Below, piece after piece: positions 3,970 to 51,100 of a DNA stretch of 64,000 nt (positions are counted from its first letter, which is position 1; every line of letters starts with the position of its first letter). This DNA is from Macrostomum lignano. Lineage: Eukaryota. Location of the stretch: positions 124,001 to 188,000 of the forward strand of contig NIVC01001514.1 of assembly GCA_002269645.1 (NCBI GenBank), written 5' to 3'. The notes under the pieces are model-generated. The model saw only the letters and a program-made list of their open reading frames with translations. It was not told the DNA's origin and did no database searches. A program made the position numbers and the translations under genes.

Positions 3970-5303
3970 TCACGAGTCCAGACAGTCTCTGTGCACCTGA
4001 GCGCTCAGCTCCAAGGTGTTGTTAAGCGGCTTGGACTCTTCATCGTCTGGTTCCTCGGCTGAGCAGTTCTCATCCGCTCGCTGGCTCAGCGCCGCTGCGG
4101 CTTCTCGCCGCCGATCCTGAGCTGACAACGGCTCACCATCGGTGGCCTCCACCGACGAATTCGATTTCGGGCGCTTCGCCGACGCGCCCTCACCGTTGAC
4201 TTCGCCGTCTTCGCCGTCGTCATCGCCCTCACCGTCGCCATCGCCGTCGCCACCGTCGCCGTGAGCCGCCCGGACGCGGTTGACGCCGGTGGCGAGGGCG
4301 CGCGTGTCCCAGTTGTGATTGTCTCGCCGGGTTTTCGGTTTCAACTGGATTCCAAGAAACTTGGCGAAGGCCTGCCGGAAATTCTCGGACAGGAAGGCGT
4401 ACAGGATGGGGTTGACGCAGCTGTTCATGTAGGCCAGCATCTGTGAGCCCGCCTGCAGGTAGCGGAACCAGTCGTCCTCGAAGTCTTTGTACCACATCTG
4501 CAAGGCGAACACCACGTGGATGGGCAGCCAGCAGGTGCCGAAGATCACGATGACGATGACAACCATGCGGGTGACTCGGCGCTTCGACCTGGCCGCTTCG
4601 CCGGACTTCGAGACGCCGGCGGCGCGGCCGCAGGTGAGCTTCCTCACCAGCAGGGCGTACAGGGTGATGATGACCAGGAACGGCAGCAGGTAGCCCAGCA
4701 GGCCGAACAGGGTGTAGAACAGCTTGCCAGAAGCGCTGAAGCCGCCGAACTCGTCAAGGAAGCGCCTGTTAGCGCAGATGTCGAGCGGCCTGACGCTGAA
4801 GTTGTCCACCGGCAGCTGCCCATGTTGATGACGCCGACGTCGACAGCGAACGGAACGTGACAGACGCTGATCAGCAGCCAGGTGGCGGCAACGGCGATGA
4901 GGGTGTTGCGCTGGTTGCGCAGGCCGATGCTCCGGATGGGGTGCACCACGGCCAGGTACCGGTCGGCGCTCATCAGCACCAGGGTGTACACGCTGCCGTA
5001 CACCGGTACGTAGGTGAAGTACTGGAACAGCACGCAGGCAGCGTGGCCGAACACCCAGCCCATGATGTACACCAGAACGGTTGGCGGGACGCAGAATATG
5101 ATGAATAACAGATCGGCTATGGCCAATGATGTGATCAATATGTTTGTGGTGTTTCGCATGTGATTGTTGGCCACTATCACCGTGATCACTAGCAGGTTGC
5201 CGAAGAAGCCAAGGAGTACAACCAGACTGAACAGTACTGTGACCGTGGCCACGAACATGTGGGTGGTGCAGTAGGTCACATTGTGAGCTGCAGTCTCGTT
5301 CAT
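3970..5303 (-). CDS. Allatostatin-A / galanin receptor-like class A GPCR, intronless, ~444 aa if the 1-nt frameshift near 4819-4821 is corrected
   Basis: ORF 4644-5303 gives TM1-TM4 (GFFGNLLVITVIVANNHMRNTTNILITSLAIADLLFIIFCVP; YTLVLMSADRYLAVVHP). The 3' part of ORF 3970-5808 gives TM5-TM7 (LFGLLGYLLPFLVII; KRRVTRMVVIVIVIFGTCWLP; LAYMNSCVNPILYAFLSENFRQAF). These motifs are characteristic of AstA/galanin receptors. ATG 5301-5303 to TGA 3970-3972 is 1334 nt, one short of a multiple of 3. Confidence 0.9.
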
Positions 5304-5346
5304 GGCGCTGAGATGCCTGTTTGGTGAGGTGGGCAGTAGTCATGTG

Positions 5347-5762
<416 letters not shown>

Positions 5763-6158
5763 CAAAAGGAAAGAAGTATATAGCAGCCACATAACGAGTA
5801 TAAATCACAATCTCTATTTATCTTATAAATGTTTTACTCGGTAAAGGGTCAAACTCATTCATCTAGTCTTCTCTTCCCTGAGCACAGATTTCCAGGTGCA
5901 AGGTGTGAACTCTCCGCGATCACTTCCATCCATCAACTGCAGTTCCCGCACGGCAGGTAAACATGGGAGGGCCTTCATCAAGTTTGCGTGGCAAGACATA
6001 GCTACTCAAATTTGGTTTCAGTTTGATCCCGAAGCTGCAGCTGGGCTAGGAGAAGGCAGTTGCAAGAGTGTGGACAGAAATGGGGGTTGTGCCAGAGGCT
6101 GAACTGATGGCGCAAGAGATAACAGAGAAGTAGCAAGAATGGCATTTGAGAAGTCAAA

Positions 6159-13584: not shown

Positions 13585-14200
13585 CCAGCAGATATTCTAG
13601 TTCATCCAGAAGATATTCGAGTTTATCCAGCAGATATTCTAGTTTATCCTAATGCACCTAGATATTTTAGTTTACCCCATAGATATTCTAGTTTATCCCA
13701 TAGATTTTCTAGTTTACCCCATAGATATTCTAGTTTATCCCATAGATTTTCTAGTTTACCCCATAGATATTCTAGTTTATCCCATAGATTTTCTAGTTTA
13801 CCCCATAGATATTCTAGTTTATCCCATAGATTTTCTAGTTTACCCCATAGATATTCTAGTTTATCCCATAGATATTCTAGTTTACCCCATAGATATTCTA
13901 GTTTATCCCATAGATTTTCTAGTTTACCCCATAGATATTCTAGTTTATCCCATAGATTTTCTAGTTTACCCCATAGATATTCTAGTTTATCTCATAGATA
14001 TTCTAGTTTATCTCATAGATATTCTAGTTTATCTCATAGATATTCTAGTTTACCCCATAGATATTCTAGTTTATCCAGTAGATTTTCTAGTTTACCCCAT
14101 AGATATTCTAGTTTACCCCATAGATATTCTAGTTTACCCCATAGATATTCTAGTTTATCCCATAGATATTCTAGTTTATCCCATAGATATTCTAGTTTAC
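13585..14200. repeat. 21-bp minisatellite
   Basis: ATAGATWTTCTAGTTTAYCCC. Confidence 0.95.
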
Positions 14201-14689
14201 CCAATAAGCATTCTTGTTTACCAGCTTTTTATCCCATGCAGTTACCAGTATTATTCAAGTTTACCAGCATCACTTCAGCTTCACGCAAACAGGATGTTCA
14301 GGTGTACTTTTTTGGGTAACTCAGCTCTGCACACCCCGCGGGTAAGTTGGAGCCGGCGCCTGATCCCCGCTCCTAGCAGAAGAGAGTTCTGGCTGAGGGC
14401 ACAATGTGCTCTTGCTGCTGTCACGAACTGAGTCTGGGATTAAGTTTCGATTCGAGAAATCGGTGACTGTCTGACTGGCGAACTGTCTGCGTGCCATGTC
14501 TCTGATTCTTCACGCAGTTTTTATCAGCAGCCATGCCTGTATCCAGGGTCGCCCAGTTTATGCTCTTTATCTGCGCCACCTGCAGTTAGCAGCCTTCTAT
14601 GGCGGACGGGATGCAACGCTGTATGAAGGCCTCCCTCCCACTATTTCTATTTGTCTCCCCCTCTCACTATATATATATATATCTATATC

Positions 14690-15609
14690 TCCTGTGTGTC
14701 TCCCTCTCTCCTTCTGTCTCCCTCTCTCCTGTCTCCCCCTCTCCTTCTGTCTCTCTCTCTCCTTCTGTCTCTCTCTCTCTTTCCGTCTCCCTCTCTCCTT
14801 CTGTCTCCCTCTCTCCTTCTATCTCCCTCTCTCCTTCTGTCTCCCTCTCTCCTTCTGTTTCCCTCTCTCCTTCTGTTTCCCTCTCTCCTTCTGTCTCCCT
14901 CTCTCCTTCTGTCTCTCTCTCTCCTTCTGTTTCCCTCTCTCCTTCTGTCTCCCTCTCTCCTTCTGTCTCCCTCTCTCCTTCTGTCTCCCTCTCTCCTTCT
15001 GTCTCCCTCTCTCCTTCTGTTTCCCTCTCTCCTTCTGTTTCCCTCTCTCCTTCTGTCTCCCTCTCTCCTTCTGTTTCCCTCTCTCCTTCTGTCTCCCTCT
15101 CTCCTTCTGTCTCCCTCTCTCCTTCTGTCTCCCTCTCTCCTTCTGTCTCCCTCTCTCCTTCTGTCTCCCTCTCTCCTTCTGTCTCCCTCTCTCCTTCTGT
15201 CTCCCTCTCTCCTTCTGTCTCCCTCTCTCCTTCTGTCTCCCCCTTTCCTTCTGTCTCCCTCTCTCCTTCTGTCTCTCTCTCTCTCCTTCTGTCTCCCCCT
15301 CTCCTTCTGTCTCCCTCTCTCCTTCTGTCTCCCTCTCTCCTTCTGTCTCTCTCTCTCTCCTTCTGTTTCCCTCTCTCCTTCTGTCTCCCTCTCTCCTTCT
15401 GTCTCCCTCTCTCCTTCTGTCTCCCTCTCTCCTTCTGTCTCCCTCTCTCCTTCTGTTTCCCTCTCTCCTTCTGTCTCCCTCTCTCCTTCTGTTTCCCTCT
15501 CTCCTTCTGTCTCCCTCTCTCCTTCTGTTTCCCTCTCTCCTTCTGTCTCCCTCTCTCCTTCTGTCTCCCTCTCTCCTTCTGTCTCCCTCCGACACACACA
15601 CTCTCTCTA

Positions 15610-15682
<73 letters not shown>
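14690..15682. repeat. CT-rich minisatellite followed by (CT)n
   Basis: CTCTCCTTCTGTYTCCCT units; pure CT run ~15615-15682. Confidence 0.95.
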
Positions 15683-15685
<3 letters not shown>

Positions 15686-16227
15686 GTGTCTCCCACTGTC
15701 ACTCTTTATCACTCTCTCGCTCTCCGTCTTCCCCTTTCCCTGTCTCCTTCTGTCTCCCTCTGTCACTCCCTTTTACCCTCTGTCCTCTCTCCGTGTGTCC
15801 CTCTGTCACTTTCTGTTTTCCTTTGTCTACCTCCGTTACTGTATATGATACGGTATACAAGTTATAAAGATAACACAAGCTTTAACTCTCACCTGTATCA
15901 GATGATAGCTAGTCCTTTTGTGTCAAAGGCCTAAAGGCGACTCAATGATGAGAGAAGAGCAGAACTAAAGCTGAATTGCCGGGGATATTCTTTGCAAAGA
16001 GTATTTTCTGTTATAGCTGCCACGTTTCTCACCTTATTTTCTTAGAAAGACTGGGTGGGGCAACGCGGGGGGAGATGGGGTAAAGACTTTGCAGGGCTGG
16101 GAGATTTTTCTCTGGCTTGCTACTAGCCAATCCTGAGGCGGGGACAACTTCTCCGTACGTTAAATCTTAGCCTATTGGGAAGCGGCTGCTCCGAAAGGAA
16201 GAGTTGAAAGGGAAGGTGACAGTGGGA

Positions 16228-21500: not shown

Positions 21501-24500
21501 ATGTCCATCCGCAGGCGCCAGAACCGCCTGGAAAGCTGTCCCGATCGTCGGGACATTCAAAGCTCAGCCGCGGGTGTCGAACTTCGCCGGGAGTTCATCC
21601 GCTTCTGCCAGAACACAACCATCCGCGGCCTGCCGCGCATAGTGAAGTCGGACTCTCGACGCATCCGCACTCTCTGGCTGGTGTCCGTTCTGGCGTTGTT
21701 TGTGAGCTGCCTGCTGTGCCTCACCTTCTTGGTTAACCAGTTTCTCGAGTACGATGTCATGCACCCGCCACGGGTGCTCAAGGACGCCAGCTCGCCGTTC
21801 CCCTCGTTGACCATCTGCAACATGCGGCCTCTGTCAACGCCTGGCAAAGACCTGCTGAGCCAGCTGGGTTGGAAGAACCCCAGACAGTTCTCTAGGTTCG
21901 TAGGGGCAGAACAGGGCAGCGGTGAACGCGTCTGACTCTTGCGCCACAACCCATGGTTCGAATCCGTGCGCGGCCGCATTCATGTGTGGCTTGTGCACCA
22001 GAATTGCCCGGAGGGTTTTGCGATTCACCCCCATGAAGACCAGCCCCCCCCCCAAGGCACAGAGAATGTACATGCCTGACGATTAGAAAGTCAGGGCTGC
22101 TGTACAACCTGTGTGAGCGAGTGTATGAGGGTGTGCCTGCGCGCTTGTCTCTGCTCAGGAGGCAGCAAAATAGGCAGAATGGCCTCAGTGCTCACTTTGG
22201 GACCCTGTCGCCGTAAGCGTTGCGCCAGGATGCATGCAGACCTCCTGCGATCATTTGTATTTTTTCCAGGTCCGTGGAAGGCCTCACCCGCCATTTGTAC
22301 TATAGCAACGAAAGTACAAAGCACATTTACTACAGTTTCTCCGGGTCGTTCGGTCTTGCCGCTTTCCTGGAAAGCCTGCCAAGAAATGACAGCCTGAACT
22401 TGGGTCATCGGCTCCAGGACTTCGTGCTGGATTGTCGGGCAGTTATAAGGAACGGCAGCGCCAGGAATCAGTTCTTCTGCTCGCCTGACTACGGGCCCGG
22501 CAGAGCGGACGTGTCGGCGGGCACTTTTCACGCGTTCAGGCATGCCAGCTTTCTGAACTGCTTCACTCTGGACATTGCCGAGTCATTGCGGAACGATACC
22601 ACATTGGTGGAAATGTCTGTCTACTTGGACAACGAATGGGGACCCGACAACTTTGAATGCGTTGACTGCTATCTGCAGGTGAGCTCCCGTTTTGCAGTTT
22701 GTTGAAGAGGCAGATCTGCTAAGAGTGCGAACATGATTGTACCTATGGACGCATCTGTGTCCGTGTGTGCTCAGGGTCCGGCGGAATGGCCATGACTGCT
22801 CGTCTCTTCGTTGGCGCTCTGACTTGCGGCAGGGCCCAACGGTTTTTATCGAGTGGCTACTGCTCCGATAGTGCATGAGATGCAATGCTGCTGCTCAGGA
22901 ATGGAAGTGTGCGGTTCGCATGTCTGATGACGCCGGACCTGGTAATTGTTCAGTGAAAGCTGTGGGATGTCAGCAGACATCTGACATACTCGTACAGAAG
23001 TCCCTTAGCTTCTAGAGCATGTAAACCACAGCAAATTGTCAGCAGCCAATTTGGGCTAATTATCCGGAAGCAAAATGACAAAACCTCGCCATTAGGCTGC
23101 CTGGCTGTTCTGATTAATTGTCAAAGTGATTTTTTGCTGTTTGGCGATGCGTCGCAGTCAATTATTTCAAACCGTTTCGTGTCTAAAAAGCTTTTTCGCT
23201 CGTTGGTAATAATCTGCGGTTCTTATAATTGCCAGTCAAATGTGACAAGCAGACGAATTGCAAGTGTGTTTGTCGCCAAGTTCGCTGAGGGCAATGGTTC
23301 ACGTCATCACTTGGCTCTTATCTACAGCAAACAAAACAGAACTCTGAAAAAGCGAGATGCAACTTAGAAAAAGTTTAAAAATTCTTCCCAATTTCTGTTC
23401 GCAAGTTCCGTGACCTCCTTCAAACCAGCCCGTCAATGGCACTGACAAACAACTTTTGATACGTCTAGCCTGACCCTCTCTTAGTCGACTGACGCCATCT
23501 GACATCGCCGACAGCTGACCTGACCCTTATTCGATATCTGGGTTCTGCAAGCGGATTTTTTTTGGTGGAGGGGTGGGGTCAATGACAATCGCCTGTCGAC
23601 CCTAACCCTAACCTGGCATTTTTGCCAGCATCTGCAAGTTAAGCATAGTTGGCTGTGGTTAGTACATAGCTGAATAGGACTCTGTTTGAGTCAACCCTCC
23701 AAGCAGCGACTGTGAGCGAGGTGGCAAATTTAGTTGCCGTAGACATACGGAGTTGCAAACCTTCCTAGTCCCAGAATTTTTATCCCTTGTAAACTGTGCA
23801 CAGTCCTGGGATGCTCTGCGCTTTGCATGCAAACAACATTTGCACATTGATTTCTTGTCGTCACACTCTCCTGCTAGCCGTCAAGCCATTCCATTCCGTG
23901 CTTTTAGTCTTTGACCACAGTCACTGGCCACAATGCCCTCAGGACATCAACACGCAGCTCTCGGGCGCCATCCTCACAATTCACGACGGCGACACCTTCC
24001 CAGACGTTAACCACGACGCTGTGCACCTGAAGTCCGGCTCTCTGACGGAAGTGAAAATAAAAAACGTGCTAAACGTGCAGAAACGCCCGCCCTACGGCAG
24101 GTGCTCGGCCGATACGCTGAAGTCTCTGGACCTGTTCGCCCGGCGCTACAAGTACATCGAAGGCGCCTGCAGGCAGGCCACGATTCAGCGCGACATCCGC
24201 GACACCTGCGGCTGCCAGGCGGCCGAATATCCGCAGATTGGCGATCCGGACGAAGTTCGATTCTGCACCGGCCTGCCAGAGTTCCTGCCCGCCAATGCGT
24301 GCAGCGACGGCGACAGCGACTTGGGGGTCTGTCGGGCGGCACTGGAGCGAGCGCACAGGTTCATCAAGTGCAAACAGGCGGTGATCTCCAAGTACTTTAA
24401 GGATGTTGTAGACAGTTGCACCCTGCCGTGCTCCTTCTACAGCTACCAGACCGAGCGTTCGACCTCAGATTGGCCAACGAAATCCTGGCAGTTGCAGCTG

Positions 24501-27500
24501 CTGCAGAGCAGCGGGTTTGGCAGACTGCGGCGACGGAAGGAGATGGCAGTCTATGACAGGGCCATCCGGCTGGCCAAGGCCGGCGACGAGATGGTGGGTC
24601 TCCGGGGTGGTGGCAGACACCGAGACTCACTGACACCGACACTGACATAGACACTGACACAGTTACTGACACTGACACAGTTACTGACACTGACACTGAC
24701 ACAGATACTGAGACACACTGACACAGATACTGAGACACACTGACACAGATACTGAGACACACTGACACACAGACAAACTTACACTTACACAGACACAGAC
24801 ACTGAGACACACTGACAGACACTGAGACACACTGACAGACACTGAGACACACTGACAGACACTGAGACACACTGACAGACACTGAGACACACTGACAGAC
24901 ACTGAGACACACTAATAGACACTCAGACACACTGACAGACACTGAGACACACTGACACCGACACTGACATAGACACTGACACAGTTACTGACACTGACAC
25001 TGACACAGATACTGAGACACACTGACACAGATACTGAGACACACTGACACACACTGAGACACACTGACAGACACTGAGACACACTGACAGACACTGAGAC
25101 ACACTAATAGACACTCAGACACTGACACGCAGTTACTGACACGGACAATGACACAGTTACTGACACTGACACAGATACTGAGACACACTGACACTTACAC
25201 AGACACACTGACACTTACACAGACAAACTGACACAGTGTCAGACACAGACACTGAGACACACACACTGAGACACACTAATAGACACTCAGACACTGAGAC
25301 ACACAGACACAGACACTGAGACACACTGACACAGACACTGAGACACACTGACACAGACACTGAGACACACTGACACAGACACTCAGACACTGAGACACAT
25401 AGACACAGACACTGAGACACACAGACACAGACACTGAGACACACTGACACAGACACTCAGACACTGAGACACATAGACACAGACACTGAGACACACAGAC
25501 ACAGACACTGAGACACACTGACACAGACACTGAGACACACTGACACAGACACTCAGACACTGAGACACACAGACACAGACACTGAGACACACTGACACAG
25601 ACACTCAGACACTGAGACACACAGACACAGACACTGAGACACACAGACACAGACACTGAGACACACTGACACAGACACTCAGACACTGAGACACATAGAC
25701 ACAGACACTGAGACACACAGACACAGACACTGAGACACACTGACACAGACACTCAGACACTGAGACACACAGACACAGACACTGAGACACACTGACACAG
25801 ACACTCAGACACTGAGACACACAGACACAGACACTGAGACACACTGACACAGACACTCAGACACTGAGACACACAGACACAGACACTGAGACACACTGAC
25901 ACAGACACTCAGACACTGAGACACACAGACACAGACACTGAGACACACAGACACAGACACTGAGACACACAGACACAGACACTGAGACACACTGACACAG
26001 ACACTCAGACACTGAGACAGACACTGAGCAATCAATGGCTACCCAACACACTACAGAATGGCCTCAGTTCATGATGCAGAGAAGACAGCAGGGCTTGCCG
26101 CCCCCCCCCACTGTGTTTGCCATCACTGCGCTTGGACCGCAGATTTGTTTTCAGGGCAGAGTAAGGAGACCCATCTGTGTAGGCAAATAGACCTTGGGAA
26201 AAGACAAAAGCTAATGAAGATTCGCAGCTAATCTGGTCATAAAAGTACAATTGTTAAAACCAAATAACCACTTGGCTGCTTCAGTTTAAGGCTTTGTTAA
26301 CAAAATCGACAAATGGGAATCGCACACCACTCCATGAGAACCGCACATTACCCCACGAGAATCGCACACCACCCCATGAGAATCGCACCACCAAATGAGA
26401 ATCGCACACCACCCCATGAGAATCGCACACCACCCCATGAGAATCGCACACCACTCCATGAGAACCGCACATTACCCCACGAGAATCACACACCACCCCA
26501 TGAGAATCGCACACCACCCCATGAGAATCGCACACCACCCCATGAGAATCGCACACCACCCCATGAGAATCGCACATTACCCCATGAGAATCGCACACCA
26601 CCCCATGAAAATCGCACACCACCCCATGAGAATCGCACACCACCCCATGAGAATCGCACACCACCCCATGAAAATCGCACACCACCCCATGAGAATCGCA
26701 CATTACCCCATGAGAATCGCACACCACCCCCATGAGAATCGCACACCACCCCATGAGAATCGTACACCACCCCATGAAAATCGCACACCACCCCATGAAA
26801 ATCGCACATTACCCCATGAGAATCGCACACCACTCCATGAAAATCGCACACCACCCCATGAGAATCACACACCACCCCATGAGAATCGCACACCACCCCC
26901 ATGAGAATCGCACACCACCCCCATGAGAATCGCACACCACCCCCATGAGAATCGCACACCACCCCCATGAGAATCGCACACCACCCCATGAGAATCGCAC
27001 ACCACCCCATGAAAATCGCACACCACCCCATGAGAATCGCACATTACCCCATGAGAATCGCACACCACCCCCATGAGAATCGCACACCACCCCCATGAGA
27101 ATCGCACACCACCCCCATGAGAATCGCACACCACCCCCATGAGAATCGCACACCACCCCATGAGAATCGCACACCACCCCATGAAAATCGCACACCACCC
27201 CATGAGAATCGCACACCACCCCCATGAGAATCGCACACCACCCCCATGAGAATCGCACACCACCCCCATGAGAATCGCACACCACCCCCATGAGAATCGC
27301 ACACCACCCCATGAGAATCGCACACCACCCCATTAAAATCGCACACCACCCCATGAGAATCGCACATTACCCCATGAGAATCGCACACCACTCCATGAAA
27401 ATCGCACATTACCCCACGAGAATCGCACACCACCCCATGAGAATCGCACACCAACCCATGAGAATCGCACATTACCCAATGAAAATCGCACACCACCCCA

Positions 27501-28277
27501 TGAGAATCGCACATTACCCCATGAGAATCGCACACCACCCCATGAGAATCACACACCACCCCATGAGAATCGCACTACCCCATGAGAATAACACACCACC
27601 CCATGAGAATCGCACTACCCCATGAGAATCACACACCACCCCATGAGAATCGCACTACCCCATGAGAATCACACACCACCCCATGAAAATCGCACTACCC
27701 CATGAGAATCACACACCACCCCATGAAAATCGCACTACCCCATGAGAATGCACACCACCCTATGAGAACCGCACTACCCCATGAGAATGCACACCACCCT
27801 ATGAGAATCACACACTAGCCCATGAGAATCGCACACCACCCCGTGAGAATCGCCCTTCACTCAATCAGTTTCAACTGAATCGCTCCCTCTGCGCAGGGCG
27901 CCTACACTCTGCTGAGAAATGTGAGTCTTCTCGAACGCAACCTGCTGTCAATCCAGCTCATTCGCCCCAACTTTGATCTTCACAAAGTCGCCGAAAAGGA
28001 GGTTCTCTCGCTGACCTCATTTCTCAGCCAGGTAGGCGGCCTGTTCTCAATATTCATCGGGCTGACAATGATCTCGGTGGTAGAGCTGATTGACTTCTGC
28101 ATTCACTGCTATGGTGTCTGCGCAATGCGGCGCGGTCGGCATCGAGACAGCGGCAACAACACGGCCCAGTCCGAGGCTTCGGGCACGGCGGCTGGCACGG
28201 ATTTGGCCGGCACAGCTGATGAGAACCTGCTGGAGGAGTTGCCGAAACCGGTTTGGGAGAAGAACGACGGCGTCTGA
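21501..28277 (+). CDS. DEG/ENaC (amiloride-sensitive Na+ channel family) subunit, 4 exons, 611 aa
   Basis: Exons 21501-21895, 22270-22678, 23943-24593, 27897-28277; GT-AG introns of phase 2, 0, 0; total 1836 nt = 612 codons. Motifs: pre-M1 [11 protein letters not shown]1 [33 protein letters not shown], Cys-rich thumb ([16 protein letters not shown]...CTLPC), M2 [23 protein letters not shown]. Confidence 0.92.
21903..22248 (+). mobile_element. Diverged full-length copy of the same SINE, filling ENaC intron 1
   Basis: Perfect B-box GGTTCGAATCC (21955-21965). Collinear blocks shared with the 60654 copy: GCATTCAT, CCCCCAAGGC.CAG, TGTACATGCCT.ACGAT, AAAGT.AGGGC.GCTGTACA, CTGTGTGAG, TGCTCAGG, TGTCGC, TGCGCCAGG.TGCA, CCTGC. 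Confidence 0.75.
24615..26030. repeat. AC/AG-rich compound microsatellite in ENaC intron 3
   Basis: ACACTGAGACACACTGACACAGACAC variants, starting ~20 nt after the donor. Confidence 0.95.
26318..27850. repeat. 21-22-bp minisatellite in ENaC intron 3
   Basis: CATGAGAATCGCACACCACCC(C). Confidence 0.95.
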
Positions 28278-28365
28278 CTCTGCTGTTATCAGTTTAAATG
28301 GCTAAAAGCAGCACAGAAGCTGATTTTTTGTTTGAACAATTTTTTTATATGTCTTGAAGATTCAG

Positions 28366-31300
28366 TGGGTGACGAGGGCGGAGAGGCAGATCCAGTGAGT
28401 GAGGTGGGGGCGGAGAGGCAGATCCAGTGAGTGAGGGAGGGGCGGAGAGGCAGATCCAGTGAGTGAGGGGGGCGGAGAGGCAGATCCAGTGAGTGAGGTG
28501 GGGGCGGAGAGGCAGATCCAGTGAGTGAGGTGGGGGCGGAGAGGCAGATCCAGTGAGTGAGGTGGGGGCGGAGAGGCAGATCCAGTGAGTGAGGGAGGGG
28601 CGGAGAGGCAGATCCAGTGAGTGACGAGGGCGGAGAGGCAGATCCAGTGAGTGAGGGAGGGGCGGAGAGGCAGATCCAGTCAGTGACGAAGGCGGAGAGG
28701 CAGATCCAGTGAGTGATGGAGGGGCGGAGAGGCAGATCCAGTGAGTGACGAGGGCGGAGAGGCAGATCCAGTGAGTGAGGTGGGGGCGGAGAGGCAGATC
28801 CAGTGAGTGACGAGGGCGGAGAGGCAGATCCAGTGAGTGAGGGAGGGGCGGAGAGGCAGATCCAGTGAGTGAGGTGGGGCGGAGAGGCAGATCCAGTGAG
28901 TGAGGTGGGGGCGGAGAGGCAGATCCAGTGAGTGAGGTGGGGGCGGAGAGGCAGATCCAGTGAGTGAGGGAGGGGCGGAGAGGCAGATCCAGTGAGTGAG
29001 GGGGCGGAGAGGCAGATCCAATGAGTGAGGTGGGGGCGGAGAGGCAGATCCAGTGAGTGAGGTGGGGGCGGAGAGGCAGATCCAGTGAGTGAGGTGGGGC
29101 GGAGAGGCAGATCCAGTGAGTGAGGGAGGGGCGGAGAGGCAGATCCAGTGAGTGACGAGGGCGGAGAGGCAGATCCAGTGAGTGAGGGAGGGGCGGAGAG
29201 GCAGATCCAGTCAGTGACGAAGGCGGAGAGGCAGATCCAGTGAGTGATGGAGGGGCGGAGAGGCAGATCCAGTGAGTGACGAGGGCGGAGAGGCAGATCC
29301 AGTGAGTGAGGTGGGGGCGGAGAGGCAGATCCAGTGAGTGAGGTGGGGGCGGAGAGGCAGATCCAGTGAGTGAGGTGGGGGCGGAGAGGCAGATCCAGTG
29401 AGTGAGGTGGGGGCGGAGAGGCAGATCCAGTGAGTGAGGTGGGGGCGGAGAGGCAGATCCAGTGAGTGAGGGAGGGGCGGAGAGGCAGATCCAGTGAGTG
29501 AGGTGGGGGCGGAGAGGCAGATCCAGTGAGTGAGGTGGGGGCGGAGAGGCAGATCCAGTGAGTGAGGGAGGGGCGGAGAGGCAGATCCAGTGAGTGAGGT
29601 GGGGGCGGAGAGGCAGATCCAGTGAGTGAGGGGGGCGGAGAGGCAGATCCAGTGAGTGAGGGGGGCGGAGAGGCAGATCCAGTGAGTGAGGGAGGGGCGG
29701 AGAGGCAGATCCAGTGAGTGAGGGGGGCGGAGAGGCAGATCCAGTGAGTGAGGTGGGGGCGGAGAGGCAGATCCAGTGAGTGAGGGAGGGGCGGAGAGGC
29801 AGATCCAGTGAGTGAGGTGGGGGCGGAGAGGCAGATCCAGTGAGTGAGGGGGGGGCGGAGAGGCAGATCCAGTGAGTGAGGGGGGCGGAGAGGCAGATCC
29901 AGTGAGTGAGGGGGGCGGAGAGGCAGATCCAGTGAGTGACGAGGGCGGAGAGGCAGATCCAGTGAGTGAGGGGGGGGCGGAGAGGCAGATCCAGTGAGTG
30001 AGGTGGGGGCGGAGAGGCAGATCCAGTGAGTGAGGGAGGGGCGGAGAGGCAGATCCAGTGAGTGAGGTGGGGGCGGAGAGGCAGATCCAGTGAGTGAGGT
30101 GGGGGCGGAGAGGCAGATCCAGTGAGTGAGGGAGGGGCGGAGAGGCAGATCCAGTGAGTGAGGTGGGGGCGGAGAGGCAGATCCAGTGAGTGAGGTGGGG
30201 GCGGAGAGGCAGATCCAGTCAGTGACGAGGGCGGAGAGGCAGATCCAGTGAGTGAGGGAGGGGCGGAGAGGCAGATCCAGTGAGTGACGAGGGCGGAGAG
30301 GCAGATCCAGTAAGTGAGGGAGGGGCGGAGAGGCAGATCCAGTGAGTGAGGTGGGGACGGAGAGGCAGATCCAGTGAGTGAGGGGGGCGGAGAGGCAGAT
30401 CCAGTGAGTGAGGGGGGCGGAGAGGCAGATCCAGTGAGTGAGGGAGGGGCGGAGAGGCAGATCCAGTGAGTGAGGGGGGCGGAGAGGCAGATCCAGTGAG
30501 TGAGGTGGGGGCGGAGAGGCAGATCCAGTGAGTGAGGTGGGGGCGGAGAGGCAGATCCAGTGAGTGAGGTGGGGGCGGAGAGGCAGATCCAGTGAGTGAG
30601 GGAGGGGCGGAGAGGCAGATCCAGTGAGTGACGAGGGCGGAGAGGCAGATCCAGTGAGTGAGGGAGGGGCGGAGAGGCAGATCCAGTGAGTGACGAGGGC
30701 GGAGAGGCAGATCCAGTGAGTGAGGGAGGGGCGGAGAGGCAGATCCAGTGAGTGACGAGGGCGGAGAGGCAGATCCAGTGAGTGAGGGAGGGGCGGAGAG
30801 GCAGATCCAGTGAGTGAGGTGGGGGCGGAGAGGCAGATCCAGTGAGTGAGGTGGGGGCGGAGAGGCAGATCCAGTGAGTGAGGTGGGGGCGGAGAGGCAG
30901 ATCCAGTGAGTGAGGGAGGGGCGGAGAGGCAGATCCAGTGAGTGAGGTGGGGGCGGAGAGGCAGATCCAGTGAGTGAGGTGGGGGCGGAGAGGCAGATCC
31001 AGTGAGTGAGGTGGGGCGGAGAGGCAGATCCAGTGAGTGAGGGAGGGCGGAGAGGCAGATCCAGTGAGTGAGGGGGGCGGAGAGGCAGATCCAGTGAGTG
31101 AGGGGGGCGGAGAGGCAGATCCAGTGAGTGAGGGGGGCGGAGAGGCAGATCCAGTGAGTGAGGGGGGCGGAGAGGCAGATCCAGTGAGTGAGGGAGGGGC
31201 GGAGAGGCAGATCCAGTGAGTGAGGGGGGCGGAGAGGCAGATCCAGTGAGTGAGGTGGGGGCGGAGAGGCAGATCCAGTGAGTGAGGGAGGGGCGGAGAG

Positions 31301-31918
31301 GCAGATCCAGTGAGTGACGAGGGCGGAGAGGCAGATCCAGTGAGTGAGGGGGGGCGGAGAGGCAGATCCAGTGAGTGAGGGGGGCGGAGAGGCAGATCCA
31401 GTGAGTGAGGTGGGGGCGGAGAGGCAGATCCAGTGAGTGAGGGAGGGGCGGAGAGGCAGATCCAGTGAGTGAGGTGGGGGCGGAGAGGCAGATCCAGTGA
31501 GTGAGGGAGGGGCGGAGAGGCAGATCCAGTGAGTGAGGTGGGGGCGGAGAGGCAGATCCAGTGAGTGAGGTGGGGCGGAGAGGCAGATCCAGTGAGTGAG
31601 GTGGGGGCGGAGAGGCAGATCCAGTGAGTGAGGGAGGGGCGGAGAGGCAGATCCAGTGAGTGAGGTGGGGGCGGAGAGGCAGATCCAGTGAGTGAGGGAG
31701 GGGCGGAGAGGCAGATCCAGTGAGTGAGGTGGGGGCGGAGAGGCAGATCCAGTGAGTGAGGGGGGGGCGGAGAGGCAGATCCAGTGAGTGAGGGGGGCGG
31801 AGAGGCAGATCCAGTGAGTGAGGTGGGGGCGGAGAGGCAGATCCAGTGAGTGAGGGAGGGGCGGAGAGGCAGATCCAGTGAGTGACGAGGGCGGAGAGGC
31901 AGATCCAGTGAGTGAGGC
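28366..31918. repeat. ~33-bp G-rich minisatellite (~107 units), ~90 nt after the ENaC stop
   Basis: GGGCGGAGAGGCAGATCCAGTGAGTGA plus a variable tail (GGGAG / GGTGG / CGA / GGG). Confidence 0.97.
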
Positions 31919-32411
31919 GGGAAATTCGTTCAATACATACGGATATATATACTCTTGATTGATATTTAAATTACAATCCGTAGTTATAATAGTAGTTATA
32001 ATTATTTAAGCTTCATAAATGCATCAAATTTGAGACGCGAATGTACAGCCTAATTGTGCATGCGGTGAACCTGCGTTATGGTTATGGTTTTTAATCGTAG
32101 CGTCTTGCTTATTAATCGCCCAAGCCCTCCAATGAATGTCATGGGGTACGCGTATACAGATCGTGTGTAAAGTGTCTCAAGATTTAAGCAACTTCATTAC
32201 TGTTTAATCTAATAATCTTGCAAATCGTTTTTTTTCAAAGCTTGCGTTGCGCGCTGGTATTGCGGTAATTTTATCAAAATTAAATATACAAGGGTTCTCA
32301 ATGAGTTGTTTTTTTGTTTTTTCTAAATCCCTTACCACACACACAAAATCACAGCCAATTCAGTCTAAATATCGTTTAATATAGTTTGTTTACACTCTCC
32401 TAAAATCTTAA

Positions 32412-40875: not shown

Positions 40876-43800
40876 CTATTCAGCGACTTTTCTACTCGGC
40901 AGCAACGGGACAACCAGCCGATCCCACTGCTCGTTCAGCTGCTCAGGAGAGCATTCCGCGTCGAGAACGACCACGCGATCGGCCCCGATTGGCGGTCGAG
41001 AGTCGGCACTGGCCAGCCAGCTCTCGTGCAGTTCGTGCATTCCGGCTAGCAGCTCCTGGCCCAAGTGAAATAAAATTAGCTAAGGTCCATTGGGGAGGCT
41101 GCTTCATTTTGGTTGTACTTTTTGTTGTTATTGACGACCTAATGTCTACCAGCCTTTCATTCAGTTTCTCCCGTCTTCTGCTTTTCCTTCAGTTGCTCCC
41201 GCTTTCTGCTTTTACTTCAGTTCCTCCCGTCTTCTGCTTTTCCCTTAGCAGCCGTCTTCTTTCCCGTCTTCTTTTTCCGTCTTCTGCTTTTTCCTTAGTT
41301 CCTCCCGTCGTCTGCTTTTCCTTAGTTCCTCCCGTCGTCTGCTTTTCCCTTAGTTCCTCCCGTCGTCTGCTTTTCCTTCAGTTTCTTCCCGTCTTCTGCT
41401 TTTCCCTTAGTTCCTCCCGTCTTCTGCTTTTCCCTTAGTTCCTCTCGTCTTCTGCTTTTCCTTCAGTTTCTTCCCGTCTTCTGCTTTTCCCTTAGTTCCT
41501 CTCGTCTTCTGCTTTTCCCTTAGTTCCTCTCGTCTTCTGCTTTTCCCTTAGTTCCTCTCGTCTTCTGCTTTTCCCTTAGTTCCTCTCGTCTTCTGCTTTT
41601 CCCTTAGTTCCTCTCGTCTTCTGCTTTTCCCTTAGTTCCTCCCGTCTTCTGCTTTTTCCTTAGTTCCTCCCGTCGTCTGCTTTTCCCTTAGTTCCCCCGT
41701 CTTCTGCTTTTCCTTCAGTTTCTTCCCGTCTTCTGCTTTTCCTTCAGTTTCTTCCCGTCTTCTGCTTTTCCTTCAGTTTCTTCCCGTCTTCTGCTTTTCC
41801 TTCAGTTTCTTCCCGTCTTCTGCTTTTCCTTCAGTTCCCCCCGTCTTCTGATTTTCCTTCAGTTCCCCCCGTCTTCTGATTTTCCTTCAGTTCCCCCCGT
41901 CTTCTGATTTTCCTTCAGTTCCCCCCGTCTTCTGCTTTTCCTTCAGTTTCTTCCCGTCTTCTGCTTTTCCTTCAGTTTCTTCCCGTCTTCTGCTTTTCTT
42001 TCAGTTCCTCCCGTCTTCTGCTTTTCCTTCAGTTCCCCCCGTCTTCTGATTTTCCTTCAGTTCCCCCCGTCTTCTGCTTTTCCTTCAGTTTCTTCCCGTC
42101 TTCTGCTTTTCCTTCAGTTTCTTCCCGTCTTCTGCTTTTCCCTTAGCAGCCGTCTTCTTTCCCGTCTTCTTTTTCCGTCTTCTGCTTTTCTTTCAGTTCC
42201 TCCCGTCTTCTGCTTTTCCTTCAGTTCCCCCGTCTTCTGCTTTTCCTTCAGTTCCTCCTGCCTTCTGCTTTTCTCTTAGTTTCTCCTCCCATCTGCTTTT
42301 TCTTCAGTTCTTCCCGTTTTCTGCTTCTCTGTCATCAGTTGCTCCCGCTTTCTGCTTTTTCTTCAGTTCCTCCCATTTTCTGCCTTTTCTTCAGTTCCTT
42401 CTGTCTTCTGCTTTTTCTTCAGTTCCTCCCATTTTCTGCTTTTTCTTCAGTTCCTTCTGTCTTCTGCTTTTTCTTCAGTTCCTCCCTTCAGGTGACCCTG
42501 TCTTCTGCTCTGTTATGCACAAGTGTAGTTTGTTTACTGTTCTGACTACCTATTTCTATGGTCATATCAGACCGCTTTTGGAAGTCTCAGGTTACTTCTG
42601 TTTGCTAACAAATAATTCCACTTTATTGCTGCAACCATGTTCAGCGGCGACCGATATTTTGGCGTAATCCTCTTAACTTATAACATGCTCCTTCTCTTTT
42701 AGTACAAGATTTCAACGAGACAACTTTGCGGTAGAACACAGAGATTAGCGATTAAGAAAGAAACACAATAGGAGCCTTTCAGAGAACAAAAATTCGGGCA
42801 TTACTGCTCTGATTGCTACTTTCCAACTGCTCAGAGGATCAGCTGCCTTGGTTGCCTATTTATCCGGCGTCTCTGCCCCCTCTCAGACTTAGCATGAAAT
42901 TAGTATATAAAAAAACAAATAAATCACGCGGATCGCACAGCCGCATAAATGCGAGTTTTTGGTTAGAAAAATACAAAGCAGACTTGCAAAAAATTAAGGC
43001 CACCGCTTATTCCACCCATCGGATCGCGATCCATCAGTCTAATTGACGACTAATTAATAATTAATCTGGATAATGGGGAATATTAATCTATTCTAATTGG
43101 TGTGTGATTAGCTCGCACAGGGCACAACATCAATTATTTCCGATACAAATTGGCTGCAAAAATGACAATTTAAAAAAATATGCAAATACATTTAACGGGA
43201 ATTAAAATTCTAATTAGACTACTGACAAGTAGAAACATAAAAAACAAATTACTCTTCAGGTTAATCAAGCAGGACAAATAGAGAACTCACAAGGCTGATG
43301 CCTCTCTCCTCGTTTCTATCGCGCCGGCGAACCCGTTCAAGGCAAACAGACGGACTGGCTCTCAGGTAAACTGCGGCGGGCAACGCGAAATGCGCGTTGG
43401 TTAGTGAGATCCAGCGAATTCGATTTGCTACGACCAATATCACACTTTGCCGAGTGGAATGGCCTCCAAAATCGTCATCCACAAATTCCTGGCTAACACC
43501 ACTTCGATCCCTCTCCCTACAACCCTTTGATCCCTCTGTCTACAAACCTTCGATCCTTCTCCCTATCACCCTGTGATCCCTCTCCCTACAACCCTTCGAT
43601 CCCTCTCCTTACAACCCCTTCGATCCCTCTCCCTACAACCCTTTGATCCCTCTGTCTACAAACCTTCGATCCTTCTCCCTATCACCCTGTGATCCCTCTC
43701 CCTACAACCCTTCGATCCCTCTCCCTACAACCCCTTCGAGCCCTCTCCCTACAACCCTTCGATCCCTCTCCCTACAACCCTTCGATCCCTCTCCCTACAA

Positions 43801-46800
43801 CCCCTTCAAGCCCTCTCCCTACAACCCTTCGATCCCTCTCCCTACAACCTCTTCGAGCCCTCTCCCTACAACCCTTCGATCCCTCTCCCTACAACCCCTT
43901 CGATCCCTTTCCCTACAACCCCTTCGAGCCCTCTCCCTACAACCCTTCGATCCCTCTCCCTACAAACCTTCGATCCCTCTCCCTACAACCCTTCGATCCC
44001 TCTCCCTACAACCATTTGATTCCTGTCCCTACACTTTGTTCCCTTTCTCTACAATCCTTTGATCCCTCTCACTACTACCTTTCGAACGCAGGCAACTCAC
44101 TAATCAGATCCAGATGGTAGAGCTGATTCTCAATAAACGATTTGTACCACTGACACAGAATTTCATAGTCGCAGCTCTCCAATTGGCCCCTGAATAAGAA
44201 GATGGAATGGCGAATATGAATTGGAAGCATTGGATGCGGACTCCTATGAGATGCGGACTCCTATGAGATGCGGATTCCTATGAGATGCGGATTCCTATGA
44301 GATGCGGATTCCTATGAGATGGGGATTCTTATGAGATGGGGATTCTTATGAGATGGGGATTCTTATGAGATGGGGATTAGTATGAGATGGGGATTATTAT
44401 ACGTGACACAGATGAGGATTCTTATTGCTGAATTCAAGTAGCTGGTTTATTTAAATTTTCACCTCTGATGCAGACTCTTCACAAATATTTGAGCACACGA
44501 ATGAAGTGTTCTCTCTATCAGACATGGTCCTTCGCTCACTAGGTCGGCCTGGCGATGCCCATCAACCATAGTGAGCATAACGTAGGCTTGAAATAAATTT
44601 GACCAACGAATCGGGTCGCTGTACATCAGCTGCAGCAGATTAATGCCATTGAAGTCAGTCCACTTTTCCACCGGTTCGTCAACGAATTTTAATGGTTCCA
44701 ACGAACCATTGTTAATACGGCGTTTTAACTCGGCCACAAGTGAAGTTTTTCCGCTGCCAATGTTGCCTTCAAGGCCAGCCTGAGAACGAGAATAGAAAGC
44801 AAATCTCACAGCTGGCAAATCTCATAGGGGCTCTGGCAAATCTCACAACTGGAAAATCTCACAGCTGGCAAATCTCACAGCTGTCAAATCTCACAGCAAA
44901 TCTCACAGCTGGCATATCTCACAGCTGGCATATCTCACAGCTGGCATATCTCACAGCTGGCAAATCTCACAGCTGTCAAATCTCACAGCTGGCAAATTTC
45001 ACAGCTAGCAAATCTCACAGCTAGCAAATCTCACAGCTGTCAAATCTCACAGCTGGCATATCTCACAGCTGGCAAATCTCACAGGGGCTCTGGCAAATCT
45101 CACAACTGGAAAATCTCACAGCTGGCAAATCTCACAGCTGGAAAATCTCACAGCTGGCATATCTCACAGCTGGCATATTTTACAGCTAGCAAATCTCACA
45201 GCTGGCATATCTCACAGCTGGCAAATCTCACAGCTGGCAAATCTCACAGCTGTCAAATTTCACAGCTAGCAAATCTCACAGCTGGCAAATCTCATAGCTG
45301 GCAAATCTCACAGCTGTCAAATCTCACAGCTAGCAAATCTTATACTAAATCTCATAGCTAGTTTTTAAGGATTATAGATAGAACTAACTAAATAGATTAA
45401 CAAAGTATCTCACAATAAATTTTGTCCGCTGCTCAACATCTTTGCAGACAGTATGCATACATAAAATATGAGTTCTATTTGGACCAAGTGCAGGTAAGCT
45501 TTTGAATGGACTGAAGAAATTTCCCTTCAGTTTATAATTAAGAATTATTCTTGAATTCTGAAATTAGTAAAACAAATAAATAAAATAGTTTCATTTTTAC
45601 ACTAAATGAACATATTAGTTCAGATAAAAAGTCAAATCAATAGAAAAAATATAAACATTAGATTAATAATATAGTTCAAAATTAAAATAATAAATATTAT
45701 AATTATTAAAGGCATTTCTAAGGTTACCTTGTCAAAAGACCAATCATAGCAGAGAACTAACAATCACAAATCCAATGCATAATTGCATAATTATATGCAA
45801 TTGAATCATTGCAAGACAATAAAATATTATTAATAGATAAATGTTAGGGCCTAGTCTTTAATTGAATTTCATAACTATAATTTAGTATTTTAGACCCAAA
45901 TCTGGACTTAATTTTTTATTGTAATTTTTAAACACTAAAAACCAAGGATTTAAGAGACAAGGCATAATCATTTTGTCTTTCATGTTAATCTAATATCAAT
46001 TGCAACTTGCAAGGCTAAAATAATTTTAAACTATTATTTAATTACATGTCAACATAGCTAGCAATTAGTTATTTGTACTTAAAATAGTTTGTACAATACT
46101 TTTCTAGAGTCAAAAAAATTTAACAAACAGAACTTGACAATTCCCAAATAATTTTCACTGGTATCATTCATTGATATTATATAAATAAGGTTGTATATAG
46201 CAATAATAACTAGGATTGATGGCTAACAGGGTCAATAGTTAAGTTTCCTTTACTTACTACTGATAGATACAGTAAAAATAAATTACAGTAGGCCCAACTC
46301 CAAGGTCCTGTTAGTGTTAGGGCTATGACCATGATGATCATTTCATAAATGGCAAAATATATAAAGCAGAAAAAAAGCAAATAAAAATTTCAAACAGCAA
46401 AATGCATTAGCTGTATTTAAAAAACGCCCAGCAAAGTGGCAAACCTTGACATACTCTTTTAAAACATGGGAAAATTAGAAAAATATAGCTAGTATACTAC
46501 ACTAAGTAAAGTATTAGCATATACTATATGTTAGGCAAGGTACACAAGTTTTTTATTTTAAAAGTCTTTCGACAACCATCGCCTGCACAACCTTGATAGC
46601 TAATGTTAATCAAATTACTAAATAATAGCTTACTAGGCCTAACATATTTGTAACATAAGCAACAGAGTGAAGTGGGCACGCACGTCACGTCACGGAAAAT
46701 TTCCCATTATCGTGGATTATCTTTTAAATTATCGCGCGGTCAATAAGCAATTAGTTTCATGAGAAATAACAATGCATCCGGAACTTTGACAAATAATTTA

Positions 46801-48128: not shown

Positions 48129-51100
48129 ATGCTTAGGCCCTCGATGGACCGGCTGTTGGACTCTTACGATGTCATCGTGGTGGGCACCGGCATCACGGAG
48201 GCTATGCTATCATCCGCTCTCGGCAGGGCTCGCAGCAGCGTGCTTCATCTGGACGCCAACGGTTACTATGGTGACGTTTGGGCAACAAAATCTCTCACTG
48301 AATTCGTCCTGTGGCTGTCGAGGCCGGCGCCCGAGGAGCCGCAGCAGCCTGCGCCAGTGACCACCGCATCCGACAGGACGGGCGCCGTGTCCACAGTTCG
48401 ACTGCCAACGGCCGATGCCAGCGTGGCCAACAGGGACTGGTTCTGGGCGCCGCGGCTGCAGGAGGAAATGGAGGTCAATAGGGAGAATCTGCTGCAACGG
48501 GTGAGTTTTTCGGCAAGTCTCGCGCTTTAACTTAGAAACCGCGAAACTGTACTATTAGTAGCAATTTGAATTTCTAAAAGTAGCAATTTGGATCAGATAG
48601 AGAAATCCAGCTCATGGCTGCAGGCCAGTAAAAAGGAGAAGGGAGAGAGGGGAGATGAGAGAAGATGAGAGAGGGGAGAGAGGAGATCGGAGAGAGGAGC
48701 GAGGAAGTAAGAGAGCTGAGAAGAGACAAACCTTGATAGAGATTTGCCATTGCCATTGTAAAGTTTCAAAGGACGCGAGGACCGGAATAGAGAGGCTTCT
48801 GAGGGCTGCATATGTTCTGTTCTCTCTCTGAGGGCCGACCCCTGTTCTAACTCGTCACTATCATCAAAATTTGCTCACCTGTGTGTTTGTTCAATGCTTG
48901 GTTATCTGTTTACGTGTATATATTCTGAAATTTCATGATATCATGCCACTTCAAAGGTGTTCTATTGTGTCCTTGTTGTTAGCTGAAAGAAACAGTTTGT
49001 TAGCCTACTACGAGATACATTTTTTGTACCTTCTATTTTTTATAAAAAAAAGAAGGAAAAAAATTACATCCTATAGCTAAACAAATTTTGTTGCTCACAA
49101 CCGGGACAGGACAAACTTCAGTTGTTTACATCCGGGTTTAAATCCAGGGGTCCGCAAACTCAGGCCTCGGGTCCTTTGAAACTTCACAATAGCATCCGGG
49201 CCGCTCGAGGTTTGTGTCTCTTCTCAGCTCTCTTCTCTCCTTTTCCTTTCTCTGCTATATGTCATTTCATTTCATCTCTCCTTATCTCCTCTTTCCTGAT
49301 CTCTTTTCTCTCCTCAATTCCCTGTTCTTTTTTTCCTATATCTCACCTGGCCCGCGGTCATGAGCTAGATTCCTTATCAGCCCCTCGAGATACAAAAAAA
49401 TTATTTCGACCCTTGGCTTTTACAAGTTCAACGTGTGTGACGCCAACTGGCTTTTTACATACTATTCATAAAGATAGAAAGCTTCAGCCCAATGCTTTTT
49501 CAAAGGCGGAAGCTACGACTCTGAGAGGGGGGGGGGTTGAAATGGGGGGCCCATCACAAGCTCGAAAAATCACATCGTCGAAAAGCATCTACCATCACAA
49601 GCTCGAAAAGTCGAAAAGCATCTACCATCACAAGCTCGAAAAGTCATAAGCTCGAAAAATCATATCGTCGAAAAGGTTAGCAACCACCATCACAAGCTCG
49701 AATAGGGTTAGGGTTAGACCTTGTGCCTTAGGGTTAGGGTTTAGGGTTAAGTTTAGGGTTGGGGTCGGGGTTAGTGCCTTAGGGTTATGGTTCAGGGTTA
49801 GGCTAGGGTACTGGTGCCTTAGGGTTAGTGCCTTGGGGTTAGGCTTAGAGCTTGTGTCTTTTCGAGCTTGTGATGATGTTTGCTAAACTTTTCGACGATG
49901 TGATTTTTCGAGCTTATGACTTTTCGAGCTTGTGATGGTGGCTACTAAATCAGTTTTCGACGATGTGATTTTTCGAGCTTGTGATGGCGACCCCTCTAGC
50001 TTGGATAGTCAGGCAGTTTACTGTTTTGGGACTTCTGGCAAAGAATAAAGTCAAAGATTTTTAAACTGTTTTGTATTGTGAGTGTCAGCTGTGGCCATGA
50101 TGCAAGTGTCAGTGAGCTTTGAAAGAAGTGTCCGGGGCGCCAAAATATTTGTTTCTGACTGAGTTCTGACACAAATGAATTGAGTTCCAGTGTTGTTTAA
50201 AATGCATGTCAGAGACTTTCTCGCATATTCAGCGGACAAAGATAATTTTAAATCCGGTTTGTAAACCGATCGGACTTCCTCAGGAGCAGGCTCGTCCGGA
50301 CATTCGAGGCGACCGGCCGTCTCGAGTCAGTCTGCAGCAGCTGGTGAATCAGAACCGCCGCTTCAACTTGGACATCTCGCCTAGGCTGACGTTCGCCCGC
50401 AGCGGCCTCATGAACCTGCTGCACCGCACCGGCCTGGGCTTCTATTCGGACATTCAACGAGTCGGCCGGTGCCTGCACATGAGGCAGAGCGGCCGGTTAA
50501 TCAGCCTACCAGTAGAACCTGCCGGCATCGAGTCCTGGCCGAGACTGTCCGAGAGCGAGAGAATCTCCTTGGCCAGCTTTTTGCAGCAGTGCAGAAGCTG
50601 GCCGGCCTCGCTGCCGGACCAGCAGCTGCCGCTCTTTCCCGGTGCCGCGGCTGACGAGCGCCAGTTGCCGAAGACGCTGGACGAGCTGCTTGAACTGTCT
50701 GGCGTCACCAGTCCGCTGGCCAAGTCTCTAGTTATCGAGTCCTACGCTATGTGCCAGCCCGACGAAGACGCATTCGAAGGTGTTCGTCGAATCCAGCGCT
50801 ACCTGAGCTCGCTGCCGGACGAGTCCGAGTCGCGGCTGGGCCCCCTGGCCTGGGTCCACTACGGTAGCAACGAAATCGCCGAGGTGTTCTGCCGTCACTC
50901 TGCCGTCTGGGGCGCCACCTTCGTGCTCCGGCGCGGAGTCGAGTCGGTTAATATCGAGGACGGCCGCGTCACCGGCGTCACTTTAAGCGGCGGGGCGCGC
51001 GAACGAGTCAGCGCCCGTCAATTGGTTTTGAACGCGCGCTACGCCCCGGCGCATTGGCTCGAGGCCCACAAAGTGCGCCACGTGGCCCGCGCTGTCTTCG

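Follow-up and report, generated by a model that had tools for sequence, protein, structure and literature searches.

A coding-region intron probably created by insertion of a short interspersed element in a DEG/ENaC channel gene of the flatworm Macrostomum lignano

Few individual spliceosomal introns have an origin that can be read from their sequence, and animal coding-region introns with a readable origin are rarer still. The first intron of a FaNaC-like DEG/ENaC channel gene of Macrostomum lignano raises the question of how such an intron can arise. The gene lies in a 64,000-nt stretch of contig NIVC01001514.1 (positions 124,001 to 188,000 of the forward strand, assembly GCA_002269645.1), called the window here. 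Its first intron consists almost entirely of one short interspersed element (SINE), and a direct repeat at its two ends contains both splice sites. Insertion of this SINE into a coding exon containing AGGT is the best explanation of the intron and in our judgement a likely one, because the relatives examined lack an intron there: the closest paralog is intronless, trematode orthologs are interrupted at a different site, and the protein alignment runs through the position without a gap.

The channel gene has four exons on the forward strand and encodes a 611-aa protein. The gene model is identical to GenBank PAA67020.1 (BOX15_Mlig028584g2; 100% identity, 100% coverage), which UniRef names FMRFamide-activated amiloride-sensitive sodium channel. 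The N-terminal part of the protein alone matches the Pfam family ASC (DEG/ENaC family, E 5.6e-18). Introns fall at residues 132, 268, and 485. The exons and the first intron are as follows, with a slash marking a splice junction here and below.

21501 to 21895, forward strand: exon 1, from ATG to donor (translation, Pfam ASC match, and identity with PAA67020.1)
21896 to 22269, forward strand: intron 1, 374 nt, GT..AG, phase 2 (gene model equal to the GenBank coding sequence, and present in all three homeologs)
22270 to 22678, forward strand: exon 2 (gene model equal to PAA67020.1)
23943 to 24593, forward strand: exon 3 (gene model equal to PAA67020.1)
27897 to 28277, forward strand: exon 4, stop codon included (gene model equal to PAA67020.1)

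Joined exons 1 and 2 form a single open frame in which the Arg132 codon, AG/G, is split by intron 1 in phase 2, while read-through into the intron reaches a stop after 12 codons. GenBank gene models for M. lignano were built from a genome-guided RNA-seq transcriptome assembly (PMC5730564). Intron 1 is made up of 6 nt outside the SINE (GTTCGT), a 347-nt SINE body, a 16-nt T-rich tail, and TCCAG, so that 6 nt at the left and 21 nt at the right (tail plus TCCAG) are the only parts of the 374 nt outside the SINE body. Its components were delimited by comparison with a second SINE family of the window, called family B here.

21891 to 21901, forward strand: left copy of the putative target-site duplication (TSD), TCTAG/GTTCGT (ancestrally TCCAG/GTTCGT), source of the 5' splice site
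21902 to 22248, forward strand: SINE body, sense orientation, colinear with the family B copy at 60652-61016
21902 to about 21978, forward strand: SINE head, degenerate, tRNA-like
Remaining SINE parts, forward strand: linker, conserved core (about 22040-22190), and 3' domain ending CCTCCTGC at 22248
22249 to 22264, forward strand: tail region GATCATTTGTATTTTT, 16 nt, T-rich, the present polypyrimidine tract, located by alignment with family B
22265 to 22275, forward strand: right copy of the putative TSD, TCCAG/GTCCGT, source of the 3' splice site and of the initial 6 nt of exon 2
60642 to 61026, forward strand: reference copy of family B with its TSDs (element 60652-61016), used to define the element ends

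The SINE begins 6-7 nt past the donor, and its body ends at 22248, 21 nt short of the acceptor. The head carries a perfect RNA polymerase III B box, GGTTCGAATCC, at 21955-21965. This is about 53 nt from the 5' end of the element, the position expected for a tRNA-derived head. An A-box-like motif, CAGCGGT, is also present in the head but is degenerate.

When intron 1 was compared with the window by BLAST, matches of 75-77% were found at about 60791-60943 and 52332-52397. These belong to family B, which has three dispersed copies in the window (60652-61016, 32410 to about 32780, and 52328-52508). The reference copy is bounded by a perfect 10-bp TSD, CAGCATGCAT (60642-60651 and 61017-61026), and its tail, CTCTAATAAAAAAAAC, is rich in A; the copy at 52328-52508 lacks its 5' end and has a tail that is (CTAA)n-like. 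Tails of the family B copies read CTCTAATAAAAAAAAC and CTAACTAATCTAACTAAAAA, and their CTAAC/CTAAT motifs are similar to the branch-point consensus. In a global alignment the intron element is colinear with family B from first to last nucleotide, with identities of 70% in the head, 60% in the linker, 79% in the core, and 66% in the 3' domain. Against shuffled sequence, the first 140 nt (head and linker) scored z = 5.3 and the 3' domain z = 3.4. The tail GATCATTTGTATTTTT of the intron occupies the exact place of the 16-nt tail of family B. A preliminary description of this locus had placed a single SINE across nearly all of a 374-nt intron at 21896-22269 and had contrasted a T-rich tract here with an A-tail in the copy beginning near 60654. 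Both observations are borne out, the former by end-to-end colinearity with family B and the latter by the two tails, GATCATTTGTATTTTT and CTCTAATAAAAAAAAC.

The junctions of the intron carry a direct repeat. In the window, the junction 12-mers TCTAGGTTCGTA (21891-21902) and TCCAGGTCCGTG (22265-22276) agree at nine of 12 positions and differ by a transition at each of the other three, exactly as first described. The ancestral form is better still. Two homeologous copies of the gene, g1 and g3, have the donor TCCAG/GTTCGT, so TCTAG in the window is a derived synonymous change. The A at 21902 is probably the SINE's own, because family B begins AAGGGG straight after its TSD and both element types begin A(A)GGGG. 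With the g1 and g3 donor, and with this A given to the SINE, the ancestral repeat is therefore TCCAGGTTCGT and TCCAGGTCCGT, with agreement at 10 of 11 positions. Assigning the A in this way shortens the originally proposed 7 nt between donor and SINE to 6 nt and leaves the 21 nt between SINE and acceptor unchanged.

The flanks of the element share this junction-spanning repeat and no other direct repeat, and the repeat's length is in the same class as the 10-bp TSD of family B. The element is thus flanked by a repeat of the kind expected of a SINE (TCCAGGTTCGT and TCCAGGTCCGT, 10/11 in the ancestral state). The body of the intron is a transposable element, and the splice sites lie inside both copies of the duplicated target. 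Two estimates of chance agreement, both post hoc though not negligible, as the repeat length was picked once seen, gave a probability of about 0.003 from AGGT-centred contexts (0.3% of pairs agree at ≥6 of seven free positions) and P = 0.00075 from shuffled 3' flanks. The AGGT null used all pairs of unique contexts from the window and the paralog locus, since minisatellite copies inflate a non-unique null. None of the 374 unique AGGT contexts agreed as well with the observed acceptor. The donor GTTCGT fits GTRAGT poorly, which is expected of a splice site recruited from coding sequence.

The same junctions bear on an alternative that we consider unlikely, in which the SINE landed in a very short, pre-existing, lineage-specific microintron at the same position. 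Microintrons are common in flatworms, including M. lignano, are concentrated near the 5' ends of genes, and in Opisthorchis felineus have a length peak near 37 bp (PMC6530080). SINEs often reside in introns, and the junction repeat is imperfect and partly dictated by the splice consensus. Given such microintrons, the preliminary statement that an ancestral intron of about 28 nt would be implausibly short was too strong, but the remainder outside the SINE is at most 6 + 21 nt, less without the SINE's own TSD, and is still under the microintron peak. The only flanking repeat also takes in the first 6 nt of exon 2, for which a prior microintron needs a coincidence (P about 0.003). Two events, an unexplained gain followed by an insertion, are needed as well, because no relative examined has an intron here.

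A second alternative concerns how the element arrived. Reports of intron gain through double-strand-break repair include short direct repeats at the ends of the new introns, and staggered break repair or another filler-DNA process could have captured the SINE, with the repeat produced by end-joining. The absence of an A-rich tail suits such a non-retropositional origin. The inserted DNA, however, is one complete element whose 5' nucleotides are the same as those of family B (AGGGG...) and which ends where the family B tail ends, both tails being 16 nt long. Random filler is seldom full-length and flush at both ends, and the 11-bp repeat matches the 10-bp TSD of family B. We regard capture during repair as highly unlikely.

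Support for insertion of the SINE into an uninterrupted exon comes from the relatives of the gene. The comparison set consisted of an M. lignano paralog, represented by two genomic copies, and two trematode orthologs, with an assumed tree of (trematodes,(gene,paralog)). The closest paralog, BOX15_Mlig031432 (64% amino acid identity), is intronless, and its two genomic copies translate from ATG to stop without interruption. In each of the orthologs from O. felineus and Schistosoma japonicum (about 43% identity) a single intron interrupts the gene, at the equivalent of residue 188 in the window protein. Across F-S-R/S-V, the five residues around intron 1, the genome is contiguous for residues 1-224 of the former and 1-262 of the latter. 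No gap occurs in the protein alignment of the relatives at F-S-R/S-V or at either of the other two intron sites. The site 1 sequence is TTC TCC GAA TCG TTG in the paralog and TTC TCY AG/G TCC GTG in the window gene. The intron is thus absent from the homologous position, within colinear coding sequence, in the paralog and both trematodes. The preliminary description had proposed looking for a SINE-free intron at F-S-R/S-V in relatives; none is present in either copy of the paralog or in the two trematode orthologs. Its central claim, that SINE insertion created the intron, is supported by this absence, by colinearity with family B, and by the sole junction-spanning repeat.

Given this tree, a single gain accounts for intron 1, where two losses would otherwise be needed. 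The insertion appears to be later than the split from the 64%-identical paralog. The SINE itself seems far younger than that split, because its core is 79% like that of a sister family and its B box is intact, while neutral sites would be saturated across the split. All three introns of the window gene are lineage-specific, and none is common to any relative examined. Homologs were reached only with a full-length query, as a search with the N-terminal 268 aa found none. A profile search for further DEG/ENaC relatives returned the same seven proteins and nothing more, and no paralog of the channel gene was found inside the window.

M. lignano has been described as a recent hidden polyploid (PMC10468722), and the 90% cluster of the window protein contains three proteins on three contigs (NIVC01001514.1, NIVC01001104.1, and NIVC01000598.1). 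Intron 1 is present in all three of these near-identical gene copies, which have exons 1-2 that are 99.0%–99.7% identical and introns that are 94%–95% identical. Its insertion therefore predates the recent genome duplication. The 611-codon open reading frame (ORF) is intact in each homeolog only when intron 1 is removed at these sites. Codon differences among the homeologs are mostly synonymous (synonymous to nonsynonymous 11:5, 16:5, and 8:2), and divergence is 0.5%–1.1% in the coding sequence compared to 5%–6% in intron 1. A family B copy located 3' of the ENaC gene is also common to all three homeologs (L005 10985-11311, L006 10892-11182) and is therefore older than the gene duplication.

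Divergence within intron 1 is not evenly distributed. The first 52 nt (21896-21947) and the last 71 nt (22199-22269) are invariant among homeologs, while 8% of columns are variable overall (P 0.013 for the 5' end and 0.003 for the 3' end). The tail region, 22249-22264, falls inside the invariant 3' block. These invariant ends fit a former SINE 3' end and tail that now carry the branch site and pyrimidine tract, with AUCAU at 22250-22254 as a possible branch site. Three independently evolving duplicates can in this way reveal which parts of a former SINE came under constraint. Judged from these sequences, intron 1 is probably functional.

The three copies also bear on whether the locus could be a SINE-disrupted pseudogene with a splice that is an annotation artefact. 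Its weak donor, GTTCGT, would suit such an origin. Against it, all three 611-codon ORFs are intact and constrained, changes are mostly synonymous, and divergence is about five times lower in exons than in the intron. No gap opens when the spliced product is aligned with the paralog and orthologs, RNA-seq-guided assembly of transcripts underlies the GenBank models (PMC5730564), and both ends of intron 1 are invariant among homeologs. A disrupted pseudogene would be very surprising given these observations.

A series of steps that led to the intron can be proposed from this anatomy. In the classic transposon model of intron gain, a TSD that contains AG/GT supplies GT from its left copy and AG from its right. 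Here, a tRNA-type SINE would have retroposed in sense orientation into a then-uninterrupted coding exon of the FaNaC-like DEG/ENaC gene, at ...TTC TCC AGG TCC GTG... (F S R S V), i.e., ...TTCTCCAGGTCCGTG.... A duplication of about 11 bp of target sequence (TCCAGGTCCGT), which takes in the proto-splice site AG/GT, would have resulted from the retroposition. The upstream duplicate would have become the donor, AG/GTYCGT, and the downstream duplicate the acceptor, YCCAG/G, while the branch-point region and T-rich tract would now come from the 3' end and tail of the SINE itself. Splicing would then take out the SINE and exactly one duplicate, restoring the F-S-R-S-V frame with no residue gained or lost. 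That splicing leaves one repeat copy and an intact frame, as the preliminary description had noted, agrees with PAA67020.1, in which exons 1 and 2 form one ORF.

Several observations weigh against this reconstruction. The tRNA-like nature of the SINE head is weak: ARAGORN finds no tRNA in it, Rfam gives a tRNA-like match far below threshold (21.8 bits, E 0.05), and its folding is no better than that of shuffled sequence (z +1.15), with no cloverleaf-like stability. The tail is T-rich and is neither A-rich nor a simple repeat as in family B, so a tail typical of a SINE is not seen. It may be subfamily-specific or may have been remodelled after insertion, either being possible because the SINE body is clearly homologous to family B. 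Within about 140 kb of M. lignano DNA, the intron's head type had no second copy and was confined to intron 1 of the three homeologous genes; that the element belongs to a multi-copy family is suggested only by its homology to family B. The splice consensus fixes four to five of the 11 positions in the repeat, whose length was chosen post hoc. M. lignano is the sole Macrostomum species in the comparison set, and if the intronless paralog is an old retrocopy, its lack of an intron counts for less. Gene conversion that spread from the exons is another possible cause of the invariant intron ends. Finally, RNA support for the splice is indirect and comes from the provenance of the annotation.

A metagenome scan with a SINE core pattern gave no matches. 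The longest stop-free translation of the SINE was compared with a library of 1.84 billion proteins, with the aim of reaching other genomic copies through exonised SINEs, and gave only two weak, compositionally biased matches unrelated to the element.

Intron 1 is a further case of a known mechanism and not a new mechanism, because a SINE intron in rice catalase A and retrotransposon-derived introners have already been reported. The preliminary description overstated novelty in this respect. A SINE-born coding intron in rice catalase A dates from a 1998 report, as cited in PMC2394776 and listed in PMC3443670. According to these citing sources, that case likewise involves a SINE insertion in a coding exon that became a spliceosomal intron, inferred from its absence in related genes. 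Rice is a plant, while the M. lignano case is from an animal and is fixed in three duplicated copies. In human 3' untranslated regions, alternative introns arise through Alu insertion, a process termed "intronization" (PMC2394776), and resemble the present case in that a SINE in an exon activates a new intron. The human introns occur in untranslated last exons as alternative retained introns, with splice sites often inside the Alu (PMC2394776). Intron 1, in contrast, lies in the coding sequence, its removal is needed for the ORF, and the duplicated target provides both of its splice sites.

The AGGT target-site-duplication model of transposon-mediated intron gain has been reviewed (PMC3443670). 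It predicts the anatomy of intron 1 exactly: AG/GT on both sides, the left copy as donor, the right as acceptor, and precise restoration of the coding sequence. The cases behind the model are mostly DNA transposons, whereas the element here is a retroposon whose TSD, at about 11 bp, is much longer than the AGGT core. An intron can also be gained when an exon segment containing AGGT is duplicated in tandem (PMC3443670; a potato case in PMC4974935), a mechanism that is similar in that the duplicated AGGT gives both splice sites and excision is precise. The body of such an intron is a copy of adjacent exon, whereas that of intron 1 is a foreign repetitive element. Tandem duplication was rejected as the origin of intron 1, as the intron body is not exon-derived.

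Introners provide the closest genome-scale parallel, as an exon-inserted element is precisely spliced out via co-opted target-site sequence (PMC9860276, PMC12130899). DNA transposons account for about 82% of classified introner families, long terminal repeat (LTR) retrotransposons for about 12%, and non-LTR elements for about 5% (PMC12130899), in agreement with the earlier statement that described introners are mostly DNA transposons. The main text of the two surveys (PMC9860276 and PMC12130899) makes no mention of flatworms or SINEs. Introners are many near-identical introns in unrelated genes, whereas here there is one intron and a subfamily at a single locus in about 140 kb. A true Macrostomum retroposon introner that seeded many introns, be it the SINE subfamily of intron 1 or the wider superfamily present in the window, is unlikely; its T-rich 3' end and a preference for AGGT targets would let sense insertions in exons splice at once. 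If such an introner existed, the three lineage-specific introns would fit elevated intron gain in macrostomid flatworms.

If the proposed insertion is correct, intron 1 would be an unusually legible animal case of a known but rarely documented form of intron gain. The parts of the textbook transposon model are all present: a full-length insert, an AG/GT target duplication, an exact frame, and an intronless paralog as a proxy for the empty site. M. lignano is transformable (PMC5730564), which would allow experimental tests of the features required for a retroposon to be spliced out on arrival.

The other two introns of the channel gene differ in composition. The junctions of introns 2 (22679-23942) and 3 (24594-27896) were read for a similar repeat, and nothing was found beyond CAG/G or G/G. 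The 5' part of intron 2 (about 22738-22799) resembles the 3' domain of family B (67% over 68 nt, E 2e-4), a marginal match from a tiny search space that is absent from the default report, and this stretch may be the remnant of an old SINE. Two minisatellite arrays take up nearly all of intron 3 (3.3 kb), at 24614-26028 (22-nt unit, about 66 copies) and 26313-27853 (21-nt unit, about 73 copies). A third array, at 28376-31921, has a 32-nt unit in about 113 copies and starts 100 nt past the stop codon. Annotated gene spans are 6777, 5505, and 5324 nt in the three homeologs, a difference found mostly in intron 3 and presumably in its minisatellite arrays.

Very strong strand-compositional skew occurs in the 2-kb blocks of 14001-16000, 26001-32000, and 42001-44000 (GC skew -0.53 to +0.59), and the skewed blocks checked, within 26001-32000, are tandem arrays. 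Other long ORFs in the window have Pfam matches to a rhodopsin-type G protein-coupled receptor (3970-5808, reverse strand; Pfam 7tm_1, E 8.6e-22), a GDI/Rab-escort-like protein (50206-51627, forward strand; Pfam E 1.8e-13), and a BIR domain (59619-60356, reverse strand; Pfam E 6e-9). Immediately upstream of the BIR ORF, and on the strand opposite to it, lies the full-length family B SINE.

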